Sequence record: NC_070936.1 | DNA: 64,000 nt | Direction: 5' to 3' (one strand) | Part shown: one piece after another, positions 3,653-63,507 of the stretch | Layout: every line of letters begins with the position of its first letter | How positions within the stretch are numbered: position 1 is the stretch's first letter | Made by a program: the position numbers and the translations under genes | Notes under the pieces: model-generated | Databases searched by the model: none | Told to the model about the DNA's origin: nothing | Seen by the model: the letters and a program-made list of their open reading frames with translations, nothing else

Positions 3653-5752
3653 TTAAAAGATATCACTCAGAGAATAATTCTTGAATGAGACATGATGATC
3701 AAAGTGTTCAGAATCTAAGTTATAACCTTCCATCCCGACCATATTCATCAAGTTCATTTTACCAGCAACAGCTTTGGTGTTAGCTCCACCCGCCATCGTT
3801 AGCTTACCACCACCAAGGAGAATTTCAACTTGTTCCTTAGACCATTCCATAATGTCAATAGAACGAGAGGTGATGTTTTCTTCAGATCCAGTATCAAGAT
3901 CAATAAGGTAAACGAAACATTCGGCATCCTGACCTTTACGATAAATACGAGCAATGGTCTGTTTCAACTCATAAGAGCGGAATGGGGAGTTCATCAGAAT
4001 CAACTGGTTACACATCAATAAAGGGTAACCTTCACGGAGTGTGTTGAAAGTAGTAATTAGCGGGTTGACATTTGGATCATTCTCAACCTGTTTAATTACC
4101 TTCTCAATATCACCAGAGTTCTCGCCATGTACAGAAATGGAATCGATACCTTCAGATTCGAAGTAAGTCTCAAGTTCTTTGATAACTTCTATATAGGAAG
4201 TATAAATCGCAGTTTTCTTTTGAACAGACTGAATCATCTCTGGAAGTTTGGCATGTCGTATAATGTCCCTGACAGCCTCCATACGGGCTCTTGATAAAAC
4301 ACGCCCTAATGCCTCACCACGAATCTTAAGTCCCACATACTTGACTGCAGACTTAATATGACGGAAGTATTTGAGGTCATCTCCCTTGAGTTCTTTTTCG
4401 ATATCCTTTTCAACTGAATGAGCAAATTTAGATTTGTCAGAATCAGTAAAGTTGTTGTACCCATGTTTCTGGAAGTAGTTCACAATCTCAATGTACTTAT
4501 CAAGACGGGCTTCTTCTTTAGCATCACCTTCTATCCAAGTGCGATACTGTTCAACAAACTTTTCCCAGTCGGAAATATATCGAGGCATGTGTTCATTATA
4601 GAACATAACACGATCTTCGATAAAGTCCATCATCACTGCTCTGATATTATTCAGAGTGTATTTCTCAGCTCCTGGGAATTTAACAGGTACAACTTCAGGT
4701 TCAGGTGGTTCGTCCATCCCCTCGACTTTAGTAATCGTAAATTTAATTCTACCCAAACGGTGAGCCAGCATCTGACTCAAGAATTCATTATCACGACCAT
4801 ACATCTTCAAGAAGTCAGTCTGAACATCCTTATCAAAGAACTTATCGATAACAGTGAAGAGAGCAAAGGTTTCACGGCCTTGAGCTTTGATAGGTGTACC
4901 TGACATGAACAATACGTCTGAAACAAACTTATTAGAGCAGAGATCAATTAACCCCTGAGTTTGTTGTGACTTATATTCATTATAGTTGTGTGATTCGTCG
5001 ACGATGACTTTGATGGGCTCTTTACCTTGCTTAGAGATAACGGAGATTAAACCATCGAATTCTCTACTACGGAGATTTTCTTTATAGATAATAAAGTAAT
5101 CGGCGTCTGCATGGTTAAGCGGATCGGTCCCATCTAAAGAAGTCCAGATCTTTGGAGTTTCTTTAAAATACTTAGTTGTCATCTCATTAACCCAAGGGGT
5201 CTGAACTAAGTGTTTTGGAACTACAATAATAGTTTTATAGGGAGAGATCATCTTGGACCAAACTAGGCTAGTGTATGTTTTACCACTACCTGGTTCAGCA
5301 TCAAGTAAACAACCCCGTAACTGATACCCATATTTTATACGAGAGTATCCTTCGAGAAACTCTTGTTGATCTGGGAAAGGTTTGAGTTTAAAACTTTTGA
5401 GTGCTTTATTAACATCGTAAGGCGGATAATCCTGGAATGTAGTTTCAATCCAGGTCTTGGCTTTGATCTCGTTATAGAGTTGATTGTATTTAAACATCCC
5501 AACCCGATAACGGTCTACCTGACGCTTGTTACGATTAGTTGTAAAGTGGTCAAGAATCCATGCCAACTCCACCATAAAGAACTGGTGTATTTTGAAACGT
5601 CGGTTATTCAGTTTAGTGATCATTCGGCTAGCAATTACAGATGTACCGAAGTTAGACTTAAGGTCCAACTCAAATGCATTTATATTAATACCGTTGATAA
5701 CATAGTAGGAACCGACCTTTTCCACAGATGGCGAAAAGTTAAAGAATTCCAT
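3653..5752 (-). CDS. SNF2-like superfamily 2 helicase/ATPase
   Basis: Motif I LLDAEPGSGKT, motif II IVDESH, motif III SGTP, motif VI QTIARIYRKGQ. Confidence 0.92.
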   Translation of the reverse strand: MEFFNFSPSVEKVGSYYVINGININAFELDLKSNFGTSVIASRMITKLNNRRFKIHQFFMVELAWILDHFTTNRNKRQVDRYRVGMFKYNQLYNEIKAKTWIETTFQDYPPYDVNKALKSFKLKPFPDQQEFLEGYSRIKYGYQLRGCLLDAEPGSGKTYTSLVWSKMISPYKTIIVVPKHLVQTPWVNEMTTKYFKETPKIWTSLDGTDPLNHADADYFIIYKENLRSREFDGLISVISKQGKEPIKVIVDESHNYNEYKSQQTQGLIDLCSNKFVSDVLFMSGTPIKAQGRETFALFTVIDKFFDKDVQTDFLKMYGRDNEFLSQMLAHRLGRIKFTITKVEGMDEPPEPEVVPVKFPGAEKYTLNNIRAVMMDFIEDRVMFYNEHMPRYISDWEKFVEQYRTWIEGDAKEEARLDKYIEIVNYFQKHGYNNFTDSDKSKFAHSVEKDIEKELKGDDLKYFRHIKSAVKYVGLKIRGEALGRVLSRARMEAVRDIIRHAKLPEMIQSVQKKTAIYTSYIEVIKELETYFESEGIDSISVHGENSGDIEKVIKQVENDPNVNPLITTFNTLREGYPLLMCNQLILMNSPFRSYELKQTIARIYRKGQDAECFVYLIDLDTGSEENITSRSIDIMEWSKEQVEILLGGGKLTMAGGANTKAVAGKMNLMNMVGMEGYNLDSEHFDHHVSFKNYSLSDIF

Positions 5753-57550: not shown

Positions 57551-58395
57551 TAACGTTTCCTTGGAACTGTCATCTTAATAGCATCAGACTTACCTTTCGG
57601 ATCAGCGTATGCGAGATATTTCTTAATCTCATTATTATAGAGATCTTTGAACTCTCTGTGTGCGTCTGCATAACCCTGGATGTCATCTTGAACATCCTCA
57701 ACAGTAACACCGAAACGAGATACTGCTTCTTGCATACCACGACGACAAGTTTTGTAGATATAAGCCTTTACACCTAACTCAACGAGTTCAGCAAACTTAT
57801 CATACATTCTTGGTGGGATTACAGAGAAGTGTTCATCATAGGACAAGATGACTTTAGCAATCATGTTAAACATAGCCGAACCAGCATCACGGATAATAAA
57901 TGAGTTATTACCTGTCATAGTGAAACTGGTGAAAGAACGTTGCACCTGTCCATCATCTAAACCATTAATTAAACGGTTAAGGCTGTTGTTCATCATACCA
58001 GAACCGCAAGCAGCATAGTTATTAAAGTTATAACCATTATTGATAGCTCTGTTGATGTTACCTGGATAAACTTCGAGTACAGATAGGATACGACGACCCC
58101 CTGTCATAAAGTCAGGTACGTTTACAGCTATGATACCGCCTGAAAGGTTTTCAATATGAGCCGCACTAAGATCAATGATCTCTGTTGTCCCACCTGCTAC
58201 GTTTAACAGGGGACCGACCATCTTCATGATAACCTTTTCACGGATACCTTGCTCAACAGTAAACTCGTCATTCACTGGAGACCAAATGCTACCATAACCG
58301 TTGTTTGGGTTATGAAACGCTAGTTTCAATAAATATTCAGATATGTCAGTAGGTCCATTAATAACGTACTCTACTGAAAAGTCAACTGGATTCAC
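57550..58395 (-). CDS. Conserved phiKZ-family protein
   Basis: 281 aa, GTG start with RBS GAGG; TAATG coupling to the next gene. Confidence 0.75.
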   Translation of the reverse strand: MNPVDFSVEYVINGPTDISEYLLKLAFHNPNNGYGSIWSPVNDEFTVEQGIREKVIMKMVGPLLNVAGGTTEIIDLSAAHIENLSGGIIAVNVPDFMTGGRRILSVLEVYPGNINRAINNGYNFNNYAACGSGMMNNSLNRLINGLDDGQVQRSFTSFTMTGNNSFIIRDAGSAMFNMIAKVILSYDEHFSVIPPRMYDKFAELVELGVKAYIYKTCRRGMQEAVSRFGVTVEDVQDDIQGYADAHREFKDLYNNEIKKYLAYADPKGKSDAIKMTVPRKR

Positions 58396-58515
58396 GTTTG
58401 AACCCTCCTAATCACTATTTCGAAATAGACCTTTATAAAAGGCATTGATCTCACTATTCAACCATCCTAGGTTCATAATAGAGAGAAGACGTCATATGAT
58501 TTAAAACTAAACAAA

Positions 58516-58560
58516 CATAAACCCCTACCCCTTCCTTTCGGAGGGAGTAGGGATTAAATG
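58516..58560 (-). terminator. Hairpin terminator family copy 5, closing the minus-strand RNA locus
   Basis: CCCTACCCCTTCC-TTTC-GGAGGGAGTAGGG. Confidence 0.75.
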
Positions 58561-59500
58561 CTTGGCTACATGGACACTCGAAAGGATAATCAATAATGTC
58601 AGGGTTGCAAATCCCGTCTCATTACAATTACCCAGACGGCTGTCTACGGTTGATGTCAACAACTTCCCCTTGGCATAGGGGCGGACCGTTTGCACTTGGC
58701 TTGGTACGCTATAATGCCATATAGTTACCTTCCAATTTCAGCGCTGTTGTCTCACCCTTGAACATCGGGTGGTCGCTCACGGTTAGGGCACGACTGTTCT
58801 ATGACGGTTCCACCAGTGCTGGAGACACTTAAATGGATACCCGTTTCGTCTAATTATTTATTGTCGCCAGACTCGTCAGATAGTACGACATACCCTCACC
58901 AAAGGGATTAGGTTGGTCCTCTGATATCGCATGAGTAACTATGTTACTCTCATAGGCTCTTTGAACATCAATGTTCAACCTTAAGTTATGCTTTCGTTCA
59001 GAAGGACCGATGGGATGTGTTCCCGCATCATCAACTCTCAAGCTCATCACAGTTTCTGCATATATAGCTAGGGTTTGTTCGACGCCAGAACACAAAGGGG
59101 TACAGCGTTCCCAACTTTTGATAGATATTGTTTTTTATGACCGCCCAGGATGGAGTTCGGGTTCTACCATCATCGATAACCCAATAGTCACGTATCGGGA
59201 GTGCATTCAGCTTATGCTACTGGACATTCTATCAAACGCGCTGCTATGTCGCCGAGGTTTACCAGGGCAACACCCACCAGAGGCTACTTACTATAGCGGA
59301 CTACCGCCGCCGTTCACACTCTGGGTTTTTAACTCGGCCTACATTGCCGAGTACTGCCTCCGTAATTTGTCTGCCCAGTGGGGCCGAACTCTACGGAGGT
59401 CTTACATCCCAATACCGTTGACTGGCAAACCCCTTCCAACCCCGGATCAACCGGCTCATTGGACCAGACTTACACTTCCCAACTTAACTGGGTTACTACA
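58561..59500 (-). ncRNA. Large structured ncRNA block 1 (~940 nt), class unassigned
   Basis: No credible ORF. Nested helices such as 58915-24/58998-59008, 59277-82/59319-24 and 59357-64/59392-99. Bounded by a tRNA CCA and a terminator; contains a hammerhead. Confidence 0.75.
58796..58890 (-). ncRNA. Type I hammerhead ribozyme, predicted GUC cleavage between 58803 and 58802
   Basis: CTAT-CTGACGA-GTCT[17 nt]AGAC-GAA-ACGG[33 nt]CCGT-C-ATAG: full catalytic core plus stems I, II and III; loop-II GCGACA is complementary to the 5' flank TGTCGT. Confidence 0.88.
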
Positions 59501-59577
59501 TGGTGGCCCTGACAGGACTTGAACCTGTGACCAGGCGATTATGAGTCACTTGCTCTAACCAGCTGAGCTACAGGACC
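59501..59577 (-). tRNA. tRNA with CAU anticodon (Ile2-like, or elongator Met)
   Basis: GGTCCTGTAGCTCAGCTGGTTAGAGCAAGTGACTCATAATCGCCTGGTCACAGGTTCAAGTCCTGTCAGGGCCACCA; encoded CCA. Confidence 0.95.
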
Positions 59578-59585
59578 ATTGCTTG

Positions 59586-59825
59586 TTATGCTTCTACTGC
59601 TTTCAGATGACGGTCAAGATCTTCGTAACCACCAACATACTGATCGTCAACTACGATCTGCGGAACAGTACGAACTGGACGACCGACGATTTCACCCAAT
59701 TTGGCGCCATCAATACCAGCTTCTACGATATTGATATATTCAACTTCAGCACCTTTGGAATCAGCCAGTGCTTTGGCGCGATCACACCAAGGGCAATTCG
59801 GTTTGCCGTAGATTACAACTTTCAT
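59586..59825 (-). CDS. grx: Glutaredoxin
   Basis: CPWC active site, RTVPQI, VGGYEDL. Confidence 0.95.
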   Translation of the reverse strand: MKVVIYGKPNCPWCDRAKALADSKGAEVEYINIVEAGIDGAKLGEIVGRPVRTVPQIVVDDQYVGGYEDLDRHLKAVEA

Positions 59826-59977
59826 TTATTTTCCTAACTGATTGTAATATGAATAAAACTGAATATCCAAATGAGGAATTCAATAACTCCCCATCCGATA
59901 ACCCCACAGATGAGACCAGCTACTATCAAGGCCCCTGTCCAGGGCCCACTAGAATAAAACATGTGTATCCCTTAAAG

Positions 59978-60054
59978 TGGTCCGCTCTGCTGGGCTCGAA
60001 CCAGCGACCGATTGCTTAGAAGGCAATTGCTCTATCCTACTGAGCTAAGAGCGG
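59978..60054 (-). tRNA. tRNA-Arg(UCU)
   Basis: Canonical cloverleaf, anticodon loop CT-TCT-AA, encoded CCA. Confidence 0.96.
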
Positions 60055-60060
60055 TGAATA

Positions 60061-60148
60061 GCTATCGGGAGTAAGATTCGAACCTACATAGTCTTACGGA
60101 CGTATCCGCCTTCGAATTCCCTCACTAAGTTTAAATAGACTATCCCGA
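60061..60148 (-). ncRNA. tRNA-like RNA A (acceptor and T-arm, no proper anticodon arm)
   Basis: TCGGGA/TCCCGA stem, GTAGG-TTCGAAT-CTTAC T-arm, TAGTCT/AGACTA helix, CGGA-TACG-TCCG hairpin; no CCA. Confidence 0.6.
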
Positions 60149-60166
60149 AAAGTGGCACTTATGATA

Positions 60167-60271
60167 GGTCTCGAGGTCAGGACTCTAACCTGACTACTGC
60201 GATGATGTCCAGTGGTAGAAACTAATCATCCACCATCACATCACTGCGATGTCTTCAACGACATCCTCGAA
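60167..60271 (-). ncRNA. tRNA-like RNA B with elongated central arm
   Basis: TTCGAGG/CCTCGAG acceptor then ACC; TGTC-GTTGAA-GACA D-like arm; ~50-nt central arm; TCAGG-TTAGAGT-CCTGA T-arm. Confidence 0.6.
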
Positions 60272-60374
60272 GTTGGAATTACACACCGAGTAACCGATAG
60301 GTGGGAAGTGGATCCCAGGTATGCGTTTTAGGCCCTGGCCTGTTGTACCCCGGTTGCACTCAGCATGTAATAGT

Positions 60375-60448
60375 TGGCTGGGGTAGTTGGGATTGAACCA
60401 ACGTCCAGGGATTAACAGTCCCCCGCTAAACCACTCAGCTATACCCCA
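60375..60448 (-). tRNA. tRNA-Asn(GUU)
   Basis: TGGGGTATAGCTGAGTGGTTTAGCGGGGGACTGTTAATCCCTGGACGTTGGTTCAATCCCAACTACCCCAGCCA; starts at the base after the HNH stop codon. Confidence 0.93.
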
Positions 60449-60916
60449 TTAAACTTTTGGCTCTATTCCTTGTTTAATACAGTTGTTGCGATATCCATCC
60501 AAATCGAATATCCCATCAACCATATTCTTCATTAGGGTTTTCATCCCCAATCCAGTTCCCTTTGCTGCCTTTCTTGCAGAAGAATAAACTACATTACCCA
60601 CGGTCCAACCATTTGGTCTAGACATCTTAACATGATTGCTCCTATGAACCTTTTCGGAATCTTTCCAATTATCCTTATGGGTTCCTATGGCAATATGTAA
60701 AGGAGAACAACATAATCTATTCCCGCACAAGTGCCTGACAACTGTATTTGGTTTTAGAGTTCCATAAATGTGGGTTGCTACTAATCGATGTGTCGTCCAG
60801 TGTTCACCATCAATAGTTATTTGACCATAACCTTCCCTAGTGCTTTTGGTCCAATTCCAGCAGCCGGTATCGGAATCAAATTTTACATTAGTAAAAACCA
60901 ATTTAACTTTTGACAT
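60449..60916 (-). CDS. Free-standing HNH homing endonuclease (155 aa; start reassigned from 61054)
   Basis: GCWNWT..GYGQI..HRLV...VRHLCGNRLCCSPLHI..GTHKDN (HNH_3 pattern); C-terminal YSSARKAAK helix-turn-helix-like DNA-binding segment. Confidence 0.9.
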   Translation of the reverse strand: MSKVKLVFTNVKFDSDTGCWNWTKSTREGYGQITIDGEHWTTHRLVATHIYGTLKPNTVVRHLCGNRLCCSPLHIAIGTHKDNWKDSEKVHRSNHVKMSRPNGWTVGNVVYSSARKAAKGTGLGMKTLMKNMVDGIFDLDGYRNNCIKQGIEPKV

Positions 60917-60951
60917 ATTAATTCCCGTTCTACCGACTGAACTACATGAGC
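60911..60951 (-). pseudogene. 5' remnant of an enterobacterial-type tRNA-Asn
   Basis: GCTCATGTAGTTCAGTCGGTAGAACGGGAATTAATATGTCA: intact D-arm GTTC-AGTCGGTA-GAAC; collapsed anticodon arm; the ATGTCA variable-loop sequence supplies the HNH start codon. Confidence 0.75.
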
Positions 60952-61615
60952 TTGGGCGGGAGTCACTAGCTCCCAGGTCAGACAATGTCCAACTGTAACT
61001 CGGTTTGATTACCTCACGGCAACCCTGCTCTGGCATCACATGGGTCTCACCCATTATCCCCCAGACTTGGCCTACGATGGCTCCTTTGGCGCACCCAACC
61101 CGAAACGCTCGCTCAAAGACTTATCGTAATAAAGCTTTAAGCAAGAGTTTAACCCACTTGACATCTAAGTCAGCACTGATTCTTACTTGCAATTCAACAA
61201 TCAGTTTCGGTTTACCTGACACCTTGGTCAATGTATCACCCGGTTTGTATCTATCACTTTTGGAAGGGCAGTGGGTTATTTGGTTTTGTCTGCGATAGCT
61301 TGGACCCTGCTCATCTGGATCTCTTCTCCGTGAGGACTGAAAGCACTATTCAAGACTAACGCTTAGTATAACGAAGTATATCTAAGATTCCGAACTTAAT
61401 CGGTAGTTGTTGAGTATCGTAGAGGGACTCGTTTCCAAATTGTGGTCCTACCATTATACAACACTAGTTAGGCTGGAACATGTAATCGCTAGTGAAGTTC
61501 CTATTCGCTGCAACGCGGGCCTAGGAAGGGAATTGGCGAACCGGCTGATCGAGGCGAATGACCATGGCTTAATCATTTCTTTTAGTGTCAACCAGTTCTT
61601 GTTCTTAACAGAGTA
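60952..61615 (-). ncRNA. Large structured ncRNA block 2 (~660 nt), class unassigned
   Basis: No credible ORF. Helices 61151-58/61270-77, 61176-81/61199-204, 61362-61386, 61462-67/61489-94; GNRA-capped hairpin 61008-61023 on the minus strand. Confidence 0.65.
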
Positions 61616-61627
61616 TAGTAAGTTCTG

Positions 61628-61849
61628 TTAATTAAATAATTTTGGTGGTGATATGATATTGGGGCGAGGTCTATAAGTCATCATGCACTTATCTATTCCT
61701 TCCTCTCCCTTTTCATTCCATATCTTAATGATTTCCTTTTCATCCAAGTACTTGCTTAAGAACTTGATCTTCCTTAGAACCCTGTCTGTCCATAGATTGG
61801 ATTTGTTCTTAGCACCCCACCACGATCTGAAGCTAATCTTCACACTCAT
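61628..61849 (-). CDS. Small basic hypothetical protein (73 aa)
   Basis: Start overlaps the end of the Tad2-like gene; phage-like composition. Confidence 0.55.
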   Translation of the reverse strand: MSVKISFRSWWGAKNKSNLWTDRVLRKIKFLSKYLDEKEIIKIWNEKGEEGIDKCMMTYRPRPNIISPPKLFN

Positions 61850-62072
61850 CCCACAGCTTCCAGTCTTCTGCTAAGAGATCAGATACTGAAGGAACCCAGG
61901 TATTGGTGATGAGTCTAACACTATCAACAATAATGAAGAAAGGTTTGATCCCAGGCACATTGTGAATACTCACGTAAAGACCTTTACCGTTCCAACCATT
62001 ACGTTGGTATTTCTTCCCTTCCTTTAGTCCTTCCAGAACTTCTGAGAAAGTAAGTAATTTAACTTTAGTCAT
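61833..62072 (-). CDS. tad2: Tad2/DUF2829-like anti-defence (signal sponge) protein, 79 aa; start reassigned from 62183
   Basis: TFSEVLEGLKEGKKYQRNGWNGKG and WVPSVSDLLAEDW are the DUF2829 signature motifs; RBS AAAGGA 6 nt upstream. Confidence 0.8.
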   Translation of the reverse strand: MTKVKLLTFSEVLEGLKEGKKYQRNGWNGKGLYVSIHNVPGIKPFFIIVDSVRLITNTWVPSVSDLLAEDWKLWDECED

Positions 62073-62085
62073 ATTCATTCCTTTA

Positions 62086-62797
62086 GGAAAAAGGCCCCAC
62101 ACCAAATACAAGGGCATGGGGCAAAGGGAAGTCCAATGGAACACATTAACCATTGGACCAAGCAGTAACCAGCTGGCGGTCACGCTTTTAATGTGGACTT
62201 GTTAGATCACATTAAAAGTGCCAGAGATTCATTTCTCTGGCTGCTCAAAATAAGCTTAAAGCGTTTGATTTTGGAGAAGTTGAGGCGTCAACTTCCATAT
62301 GTGTATTTCAGAAAACAAACATATGGAAGTAGGGTCTTTCGACCCTTCCAACCTCACTGAAGACTTCCTTGCCTTCCCTAGGAATACTATTTCTAATACT
62401 CTTAGGGAAAGCAAATGCATACCAGGAAAAGTAGTATGCACTCACCTTCTTACCTATTGTGAAGATATCAAAGCCGCGGAGCACGATCCCTTCTTTATAT
62501 TCACTCTTTCTAATTGAATGAATTATAAAGAAAGGGGGAAGGGCAGACTTCCCACCTTTGGTACAGGAGTGATGAACAATGGCCACAAAAACCCGGCAAT
62601 GAGCATTAGTGGTAGAAGCACGATGGCAGTTCGTGATTCTTTAAATGGACTTATTCTAATTAAGATCACTTAAAGAATCAGAGATATTAATCGTGACATA
62701 ATATCTCTGGCCTGTGTATTTAATCACAGCAAACGTGTTATGAGCAATGCAACTTGAACAACAAAAAGAGAAGTGGAAGAAGTTCACTTTTTGTTAC
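62086..62797 (-). ncRNA. Large structured ncRNA or leader, block 3 (~710 nt), class unassigned
   Basis: Almost continuous long helices (62131-39/62150-58, 62185-95/62208-18, 62291-302/62319-30, 62635-44/62670-79, 62679-88/62700-09); GAAA tetraloop on the minus strand (62331-46); ends in GCCCCA/TGGGGC-CTTTTT. Confidence 0.7.
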
Positions 62798-62822
62798 ATA
62801 ATATAAATAAGTTCCATTATTA

Positions 62823-62845
62823 AATAAATAGATATTATTAGATTG
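62823..62845 (+). promoter_or_regulatory. Early-type phage promoter motif (partial)
   Basis: AATA-AATAG-ATATTATT-AGAT-TG. Confidence 0.5.
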
Positions 62846-62892
62846 AATATACGTTGATATTAATTCTAACTTTAAGTATAGAGGAACTTATT

Positions 62893-63507
62893 ATGCATAT
62901 CCCAGAAACTGAACTCACTCGTCTGCGTAAAATCATCATCAACACCCTGACTGAGAAGTTTCATGTGAATCAAGTGACCGTAGAACAGGTCGACACTTCT
63001 AAGTTATATGAAGGTCATATTTGGGAGTCTGAAGTTTACGCTTTTGAGTTTATCATTAACGGTACTGATCGTTATATTACTTTTTGTACTCTGCGTTATG
63101 GGCGGACAATGTTTACCAGAGCTAAGCAGGGCATCTGTCCATCACTAGCTAAATTAATTAGACCGCATGACTTTGGGCTAATGGCTACTGGCGATTATTT
63201 AAATCGTAATGATGTGATAGGTAAGTTCATCGAGTGTCAGATAAACTTGAAAGCCCATCAACACCTACAGAGTTATTTTGCAGGTCATGCTGCCATTACC
63301 AATAAAGAATACGATGTCGCCATCGGCTACGACATTACTCGTCGACACAAAACCACAATGACCTTTGACTGTATTTTTGAAATCCTAGTCAAAGAGAAGA
63401 ATACCATTGACTTCACCAAGTATTCTGGAATGATGATCAATGGCTCCCTCACCATGTTGAATGATGTCAATGGTAAGAGTGTTAATATCAGGGACATCTT
63501 CATCTAA
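62893..63507 (+). CDS. Hypothetical protein (204 aa; start reassigned from 62854)
   Basis: ATG at 62893 behind RBS GAGGA. Confidence 0.8.
   Translation: MHIPETELTRLRKIIINTLTEKFHVNQVTVEQVDTSKLYEGHIWESEVYAFEFIINGTDRYITFCTLRYGRTMFTRAKQGICPSLAKLIRPHDFGLMATGDYLNRNDVIGKFIECQINLKAHQHLQSYFAGHAAITNKEYDVAIGYDITRRHKTTMTFDCIFEILVKEKNTIDFTKYSGMMINGSLTMLNDVNGKSVNIRDIFI

Follow-up and report, generated by a model that had tools for sequence, protein, structure and literature searches.

What does the gene-free stretch beside the tRNA genes of Klebsiella phage N1M2 encode, and does it give rise to one RNA or to several? The window analyzed here comprises the last 64 kb (64,000 nucleotides of record NC_070936.1) of this 253-kb jumbo phage, a relative of Pseudomonas phage OBP. 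The element in question, referred to as block 2, is non-coding and lies on the minus strand at 60952-61630, co-oriented with the tRNA genes. A first-pass annotation had placed a structured RNA of about 660 nt here, immediately 5' of a tRNA remnant and HNH gene, with a 3' end that could be made by RNase P and, speculatively, a guide role following HEARO/omegaRNA logic. Comparison with relatives supports a structured, conserved non-coding RNA at this position, and its true 5' limit falls at ~61630, slightly past the 61615 given earlier. These comparisons also show that block 2 is a chain of independently conserved RNA modules, which we term H0/H1, domain A, 'mid', domain B, B4, and module C. Because relatives combine, lose, and swap these modules independently, the idea of a single 660-nt structured RNA does not hold.

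Searches with blastn detected block 2 in Serratia phages Yubaba and Sureiya (~90% identity), OBP (in patches, 80%), Kosakonia phage Kc263, and Shewanella phage SXP01. Synteny, pattern scans, and look-ups added Erwinia phage AH04, Pantoea phage Survivor, and four uncultured jumbo-phage contigs, three of them 264-271 kb long (L015, L071/L150, and L077); a further contig, L277, is 121 kb. In all relatives a Tad2-like gene bounds the block region on one side and the tRNA genes on the other, and its conserved cores are 80-90% identical where the flanking genes show no DNA match. The combinations of modules vary. In domains A and B, Yubaba and Sureiya hardly differ; between these domains Sureiya carries a 67-amino-acid open reading frame (ORF; phrog_5444), whereas Yubaba, like N1M2, carries the non-coding 'mid' cassette. 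Domain B is present in N1M2, Yubaba, Sureiya, OBP, and Kc263, and also in Survivor and L277, where it is accompanied by only a diverged domain A. It is absent from AH04, L015, L077, and L150, which have domain A and the ORF. Apart from this small cassette ORF, which N1M2 lacks, no ORF on either strand of block 2 is conserved across the relatives.

All base pairings listed in the first-pass annotation are present and make sense on the minus strand, which is the strand of the tRNA genes. The long-range pairing of AACCCACU (61277-61270) with AGUGGGUU (61158-61151) closes domain B, and the helix is kept through A:U to G:C exchange as CCCGCU/AGCGGG in OBP and Kc263 and as CCCCGC/GCGGGG in Survivor. 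CACUAG (61494-61489) and CUAGUG (61467-61462) form helix P2 of domain A, and in relatives these strands are swapped for quite different complementary ones. A CUUAG...CUAAG hairpin stands at 61386-61362, and the hairpin with a GUGA loop at 61024-61007; in Yubaba the loop of the latter reads GCGA, still of the GNRA type, and a G.U pair has become A:U. Finally, GGGAG-CUAGUGA-CUCCC (60974-60958) lies immediately 5' of the 27-nt fragment of a tRNA-Asn gene (60951-60925). The covariation analysis that had been called for finds compensatory changes in domain A and in domain B, and conservation together with covariation among the aligned sequences confirms structure in block 2 beyond chance.

Domain A (61436-61531, minus strand) consists of helices P1 (61527-61498) and P2 (61494-61462). 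The loop of P2, UACAUGUUCCAG (61484-61473), is near-invariant, as is the tail GGUAGGACCACAAU (61452-61439) with which it is predicted to pair. A gapped pattern built from UACAUGUUCCAG and the downstream GGYAGGACCACAAU recovered ~60 contigs of ~40 kb from IMG/VR, further metagenome contigs, and Xenorhabdus genomes. In these lambdoid prophages domain A sits a few bases past an intrinsic terminator downstream of a Q-type antiterminator gene, and is followed on its 3' side by two more hairpins, another terminator, and lysis genes. From 17 distinct prophage copies, and with no jumbo-phage sequence included, we built a covariance model (R1). Its sole match in the window is 61436-61531 on the minus strand (39.6 bits, E 5.8e-9), and on whole phage genomes it finds one copy per jumbo relative searched and nothing else. 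A scan of a genome collection with the pattern gave 66 matches, of which R1 confirmed seven, all in Xenorhabdus; among 151 genomes of the Xenorhabdus order, R1 recovered the starting genome only. A 16-mer from the tail alone gave mostly chance matches. A 25-bit R1 match in a Bacteroidota bin lies inside hemL and was rejected as a false positive; it marks the noise level of the model.

The helices of domain A are well supported across these copies. Twelve of the 24 pairs in P1 and P2 are changed on both sides among the 17 prophage copies, a count as high being reached in none of 500 shuffles. Under constrained folding P2 forms in all 38 distinct copies, from at least eight different strand pairs. 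For the loop-to-tail pairing, RNAalifold gives 99.5% of cells as paired, with one pair C:G in 18 copies and U:A in seven and most of the others at positions that the search pattern holds constant. Searching instead with an anchor in the P1 loop, independent of that pattern, led back to these loci and to one additional copy that differs by a single G-to-A change; the jumbo-phage copies came from similarity and synteny and not from the pattern. Taken together, sequence comparison shows domain A to be a family common to lambdoid prophages and jumbo phages, with two helices, a predicted loop-to-tail pseudoknot, and ~23 near-invariant bases. No Rfam 15 family covers block 2 or its domain A, either at gathering score over the whole window or at E up to 10 or 1 over the region (58000-63000 in the window), four relatives, and one prophage copy; the only Rfam matches in the searched sequences are tRNAs, isrI, STnc100, and a sub-threshold isrJ. 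Literature on jumbo-phage non-coding RNA, late-operon RNA motifs, put RNA, and IsrJ, two Breaker-lab surveys, and the Minerva preprint likewise gave no match to domain A. As a separate observation, in one prophage-type contig (L052, ~4772-5040, minus strand, and L160) tRNA-like T-arm/acceptor fragments, not called by ARAGORN, lie to either side of domain A, which suggests decayed tRNA genes beside the motif outside jumbo phages too.

The modules around domain A differ in how widely they are shared. At the 5' end, H0 (61606-61630, minus strand) is a 7-bp hairpin that overlaps the stop of the upstream small ORF and holds a TATACTCTGTTA box conserved in OBP, SXP01, Survivor, and L077. We considered this box as a general phage promoter and rejected it: the window holds 12 matches against 14.4 expected, and with no enrichment elsewhere it is not a general promoter consensus. 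The H1 extension hairpin (61541-61595, minus strand) is confined to the N1M2/Yubaba/Sureiya/L277/Survivor lineage and absent from OBP, Kc263, and AH04; its inner stem AAUGAU/GUCAUU becomes AGUGAU/GUCACU in L277. The 'mid' cassette (61278-61435, minus strand) has hairpins at 61430-61412, 61403-61390, and 61386-61362. Over its first 60 nt, the cassette shares 90% identity with the distant SXP01, a GAGU/ACUC to GACU/AGUC exchange is seen in L277, and the same slot holds an ORF of 67-80 amino acids (phrog_5444) in Sureiya, OBP, Kc263, AH04, Survivor, and L150.

Domain B (61151-61277, minus strand) is a multi-helix module closed by AACCCACU/AGUGGGUU, with a conserved internal hairpin UUGAC-CAAGGU-GUCAG (61231-61216). 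It is followed by B4 (61108-61147, minus strand), a 40-nt, nearly perfect 16-bp hairpin with the conserved apex UUAUUAYGAUA, whose stem survives in OBP and Kc263 through compensatory changes. Over domain B and B4 together, RNAalifold on six phages finds 20 of 55 predicted pairs to be compensatory, the closing helix included. A pattern scan of IMG/VR for domain B returned OBP only. L150 has two copies of B4, each preceding a module C, and we infer that B4 is a candidate processing or cleavage site between modules.

Module C of the N1M2 type (60952-61107, minus strand) is a hairpin junction that includes the hairpin at 61024-61007 and the terminal one at 60974-60958. By our own alignment count it is ~92% identical between N1M2 and the distant jumbo contig L150, while the adjoining HNH proteins are only 60% identical. 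Three pairs in the module C alignment are compensatory, and the GNRA loop is kept. In OBP and SXP01 the same slot is taken by a different module C, the OBP type, and L150 has both types in tandem, each behind its own B4-like hairpin. The OBP-type module is itself a separate conserved RNA of ~170 nt, which has no Rfam match in OBP or SXP01 and recurs in Salmonella jumbo phage SA002, beside tRNA-like sequences, and in the 75-kb Pseudomonas phages Holyagarpour and Ebordelon; the Holyagarpour copy includes one hairpin with a T-arm-like sequence. Its copies are located on the minus strand of L004 (2817-3000), L006 (2620-2790), L040 (2501-2671), and L041 (2501-2666) and on the plus strand of L150 (3945-4115). 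A short resemblance of module C to 5S rRNA or tRNA, in a GGG...CCCAUG hairpin, is unsupported by Rfam and ARAGORN and was set aside.

In an effort to define how block 2 relates to the genes on its 3' side, we examined the adjoining tRNA and HNH sequences. The remnant at 60925-60951 (minus strand) comprises the first 27 nt of a resident, type 1 tRNA-Asn, truncated at the junction of the D stem and anticodon stem. In an alignment the break is identical in N1M2, L150, and L077, and a remnant is also found in L277. Next comes an ORF of 155 amino acids from the ATG at 60916 (60449-60916, minus strand), whose sole Pfam match above the curated cut-off is HNH_3 (PF13392, E 1.2e-9), with a weaker zf-His_Me_endon match below the cut-off and matches to HNH PHROGs to E 8e-24. 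Homologues occupy the same site in L150 (60% identity), L077, and L277 (71%, the closest). The RefSeq coding sequence (record 249816-250403; window 60449-61036) starts upstream and spans the tRNA remnant into module C; the ATG at 60916 is the likelier start, since the homologues in L150 and L077 begin right after the remnant. One base past the HNH stop begins a 74-nt tRNA-Asn (GUU) of a second type (60375-60448, minus strand), which is part of the cassette, and in L077 a type 2 tRNA-Asn likewise follows directly after the HNH stop.

Six relatives have an intact tRNA-Asn gene, and the HNH gene is sporadic, at a fixed site, among syntenic genomes. In a metagenomic contig of an HNH-free relative, 60372 is joined to 60925 by 51 other bases, which fits an intact tRNA. 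The gene comparisons thereby show that the HNH gene and its own tRNA-Asn make up what appears to be a mobile homing-endonuclease cassette, which took the place of the resident tRNA-Asn over its 3' two-thirds. Type 2 and type 1 tRNA-Asn differ at the majority of positions near the break, and this difference would fit immunity of the cassette's own allele. The proposal of an RNase P-made 3' end for block 2 fares differently in the two settings. It is plausible in HNH-free relatives where the block abuts an intact tRNA-Asn; such a gene lies directly 3' of the block in Yubaba, Sureiya, OBP, and Kc263, while in SXP01 an ORF intervenes. It does not hold at the N1M2 remnant, which keeps the first 27 nt only: as this lacks the T arm and the 3' acceptor strand, the nearest real RNase P site would be the 5' end of the second tRNA-Asn, at 60448, past the HNH ORF. 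Among homing endonucleases, this would be a clear case of one whose arrival destroys a tRNA gene while providing a substitute for it.

We read block 2 as the untranslated, structured part of a minus-strand operon, a chain of modules processed together with the tRNAs, and consider this somewhat better than an even bet. Modules and tRNAs would share a single precursor transcript, from which host processing enzymes would free the modules, with RNase P cutting at the tRNA 5' ends and a double-strand-specific or RNase E-type enzyme cutting at B4; the modules may persist as stable small RNAs or act as a structured leader. With the HNH gene inserted, as in N1M2, block 2 would have become the 5' leader of an mRNA for HNH, and the ancestral RNase P site would have been lost. 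Among public runs, no RNA-seq of N1M2 was found. One public transcriptome run (coded X16; organism G; 2015) holds a single 168-nt contig, 100% identical to 61258-61425, which covers 'mid' and runs into the beginning of domain B; the run contains no other part of the 3 kb around it. A complementary DNA metatranscriptome holds a contig over 61389-61539. We take these RNA-library contigs as hints of transcription of block 2 and not as proof.

Several points weigh against this interpretation. Folded as a whole, block 2 has a minimum free energy that does not beat shuffled sequence (z = -0.82), so that its structure has to be argued from comparison with relatives. For domains B and C this comparison comprises 4-7 sequences, three of them near-identical. 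R1 does not detect the diverged domain A of Survivor and L277. The prophage copies were chosen by a pattern that fixes loop and tail, so the invariance of these two elements is partly by construction, and five of the eight pseudoknot pairs cannot vary in the prophage set. The RNA-library contigs are short, strandless, and possibly DNA-derived, and we only infer the processing steps and the host partner of block 2. Nonetheless, the distribution of domain A bears on what it might act upon. Host polymerase transcribes lambdoid late genes, while OBP-like jumbo phages encode their own polymerases; a motif conserved in phages of both kinds should thus have its target outside polymerase and the HNH protein. 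Most likely, domain A would act via a host nuclease, an RNA-binding protein, the translation/tRNA machinery, a small molecule, or its own chemistry. A tentative extension, to which we assign a rather low probability, is that domain A (perhaps with B and C) is a new class of phage RNA, either a decoy against a host defense protein that targets RNA or tRNA or a self-cleaving ribozyme, shared horizontally between lambdoid prophages and jumbo phages and situated in an anti-defense neighborhood.

Other explanations were weighed against the operon reading. Adjacency and co-orientation in N1M2, along with an N1M2-type module C that also adjoins the HNH gene in L150, are all that favors block 2 as a guide or partner RNA of the HNH protein, a reading to which we give practically no credence. 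The co-occurrence check proposed earlier finds block 2 with no HNH gene in five relatives (Yubaba, Sureiya, OBP, Kc263, and SXP01) and one HNH-free metagenomic contig. Conversely, L077 has the HNH gene at the same break with neither domain B nor module C, and L277 has it with only a diverged domain A; since RNA modules and HNH gene occur without each other, the guide-RNA idea fails. The 155-amino-acid HNH_3 protein has no RuvC part or bridge helix, as the first-pass annotation had rightly observed, and the HEARO model (RF02033) has no match at gathering score in the window or at E up to 10 in 58000-63000. Insertion inside a tRNA gene with a replacement tRNA is, moreover, behavior expected of a protein-guided homing endonuclease, for which SegB is a precedent (PMC2330249). 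The mosaic character of the locus, with its tRNA remnant, degenerate tRNA-Ser, and swapped cassettes, could instead mean that block 2 is functionless, decaying debris, conserved through recent common descent or co-conversion by the homing endonuclease, and the near identity of module C in N1M2 and L150 may reflect recent transfer. Against this, compensatory changes hold the helices of domains A, B, and B4 in phages whose DNA is barely alignable, domain A is common to unrelated lambdoid prophages, and the 80-90% identical cores stand amid unmatched flanks; we consider decay very improbable. A group I intron was also considered, since relatives show an ORF with structured RNA on either side, and was rejected: the Rfam model has no match at E up to 10, the upstream neighbor is a complete Tad2-like ORF and the downstream one a tRNA, with no exons to join, and the supposed halves are not interdependent, as domain A occurs without B (AH04, L015, L077, and L150) and B with a diverged A (Survivor and L277).

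Domain A could also be a cis-regulatory leader, a riboswitch or attenuator sensing a ligand or factor, with the other modules as unrelated passengers. The prophage layout, in which the motif is followed by two hairpins and an intrinsic terminator upstream of holin, resembles an aptamer with its terminator; the motif is single-copy and always upstream of, and co-oriented with, the downstream genes; and near-invariant loop and tail bases joined by a pseudoknot are typical of aptamers. However, these downstream genes are unrelated (lysis genes, a methylase, a small acidic ORF, tRNAs), whereas the genes under a riboswitch commonly have a connection with its ligand. Terminator and predicted pseudoknot strand are distinct, with another hairpin between them and no overlap; Q-modified polymerase passes terminators; and in N1M2 no ORF or terminator follows domain A. 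We judge such a leader unlikely. Less probable still, and in our view doubtful, is a self-cleaving ribozyme of a new class by which long phage transcripts would be cut up. At ~95 nt, with a predicted pseudoknot and ~23 near-invariant bases, phage-borne, and located between genes of polycistronic units, domain A has the profile of twister, pistol, and hatchet. In L048 an alignment to the Rfam IsrJ model, below gathering score, begins ~19 nt past the motif tail, and IsrJ is a known stable RNA species in Gifsy-1 (PMC4825925), which makes it conceivable that a 5' end is made beside the motif. No Rfam ribozyme family matched, however, and Gifsy-1 has IsrJ without the domain A motif, so IsrJ is independent of it.

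How does block 2 compare with known phage RNAs? By description, the stable RNAs of the T4 tRNA cluster (species 1 and 2) are similar in being non-tRNA structured RNAs co-oriented among phage tRNA genes. They mature from the same precursor as the tRNAs, with RNase P, and have no known function. Block 2 differs in being much longer and modular, and domain A is found, too, in lambdoid prophages that have no tRNA gene annotated nearby. GOLLD and ROOL are likewise large structured RNAs of phages and prophages that often adjoin tRNA genes and have no known function. Their Rfam models have no match in the window or four relatives, and block 2 is made of separable modules of 40-160 nt in place of one large conserved fold, such as those of the large ornate GOLLD and ROOL RNAs seen by cryo-electron microscopy (bioRxiv 10.1101/2024.12.08.627333). 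The T4 tRNA-cluster RNAs and GOLLD/ROOL are the closest counterparts in kind.

Other systems share individual features. A structured RNA beside an HNH-domain gene recalls HEARO/omega RNA and IscB, from which the N1M2 locus differs in an HNH protein without RuvC or bridge helix, an RNA without a HEARO match, and the separability of the two in relatives. T4 SegB, a free-standing homing endonuclease, is, like the HNH cassette, a nuclease gene in a phage tRNA region, patchy among relatives; it cuts within the tRNA gene region of related phages and takes flanking DNA along (PMC2330249). SegB is a GIY-YIG enzyme, whereas the N1M2 cassette encodes an HNH_3 protein, truncates the tRNA gene, and brings a substitute tRNA-Asn. 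IsrK and IsrJ of Gifsy-1 (PMC4825925, PMC2330248) lie in the same Q-to-holin leader as prophage domain A, and 3' of the latter come a hairpin and terminator resembling IsrJ (27 bits, against a gathering score of 37 bits); the motif is absent from Gifsy-1 itself, and the isrI, isrJ, and isrK models do not cover domain A. The HK022 put RNA (PMC9378689), compared by description only, is also a lambdoid leader RNA, of ~70 nt with two stems, that needs no phage protein. In contrast to domain A, put lies in early operons, forms a triple helix and not a loop-to-tail pseudoknot, and binds the zinc-binding domain of host polymerase.

The genes flanking block 2 are all on the minus strand. On that strand the order runs from a Tad2-like ORF through an ORF of 73 amino acids, block 2, the tRNA-Asn fragment, the HNH ORF, tRNA-Asn, a degenerate tRNA-Ser, tRNA-Arg, glutaredoxin, tRNA-Met, and a ~1.1-kb non-coding block to virion genes. 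A simple scan found no terminator-like site on the minus strand from 62220 to 58405. The Tad2-like (Thoeris anti-defense 2) ORF encodes 79 amino acids (61836-62072; PF11195, E 1.9e-17), and its homologue stands directly upstream of the RNA block in OBP, Kc263, SXP01, Survivor, AH04, and L277; the RNA/tRNA locus thus begins with an anti-defense gene. The 73-amino-acid ORF (61631-61849, minus strand) is labeled 'methionine--tRNA ligase' in RefSeq. It matches nothing in Pfam or PHROG, and a large protein search returned no homologue but itself; an unannotated copy is present in Yubaba. The label looks unfounded. This ORF was also considered as an RNA-binding partner and rejected, having no family and no homologues, while other jumbo relatives have the Tad2-like ORF in its place. 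The degenerate tRNA-Ser (60063-60149, minus strand; a sub-threshold tRNA match of 20.7 bits) looks decayed, because relatives have an intact tRNA-Ser(GCU) there. The N1M2 phage paper reports three tRNA genes and is silent on the block 2 region (PMC7058600).

Three further gene-free stretches were observed nearby. Between the degenerate tRNA-Ser and tRNA-Asn lie ~225 nt of unexplained non-coding sequence (60150-60374). The ~1.1-kb block between tRNA-Met and the virion genes (58400-59500, minus strand) has a core at ~59095-59245 that matches Kc263, Edwardsiella phage pEt-SU, and Pantoea phage Survivor at ~84-85%. The RefSeq ORF gp252 (59010-59522, plus strand) lies inside this block, overlaps tRNA-Met on the opposite strand, and is probably spurious. 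Finally, 62184-62892 is a gene-free region of ~700 nt between divergent operons, with several hairpins and two minus-strand terminator-like sites (62241-62220 and 62553-62536). In the public annotation, our analysis would correct an HNH start placed too far upstream, probably spurious ORFs drawn across RNA modules, and a 'methionine--tRNA ligase' label that has no support.

What block 2 may mean for these phages follows in part from where it lies. With a Tad2-like sponge, phage tRNAs, and a homing endonuclease as its neighbors, an anti-defense role for block 2 is attractive, as far as gene content can suggest one. A 2026 paper treats the T4 tRNA cluster as an anti-defense locus (PMC13096335). 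Domain A is compact (~95 nt), easily synthesized, and present in tractable lambdoid prophages of Salmonella and Xenorhabdus as well as in jumbo phages; its function could therefore be tested in a simple genetic system and then carried over to jumbo phages. Phage tRNA clusters are now viewed as counter-defense loci, and the RNAs that accompany them, among them T4 species 1 and 2, GOLLD, and ROOL, are unexplained; block 2 would add a chain of small, separable modules to this company.

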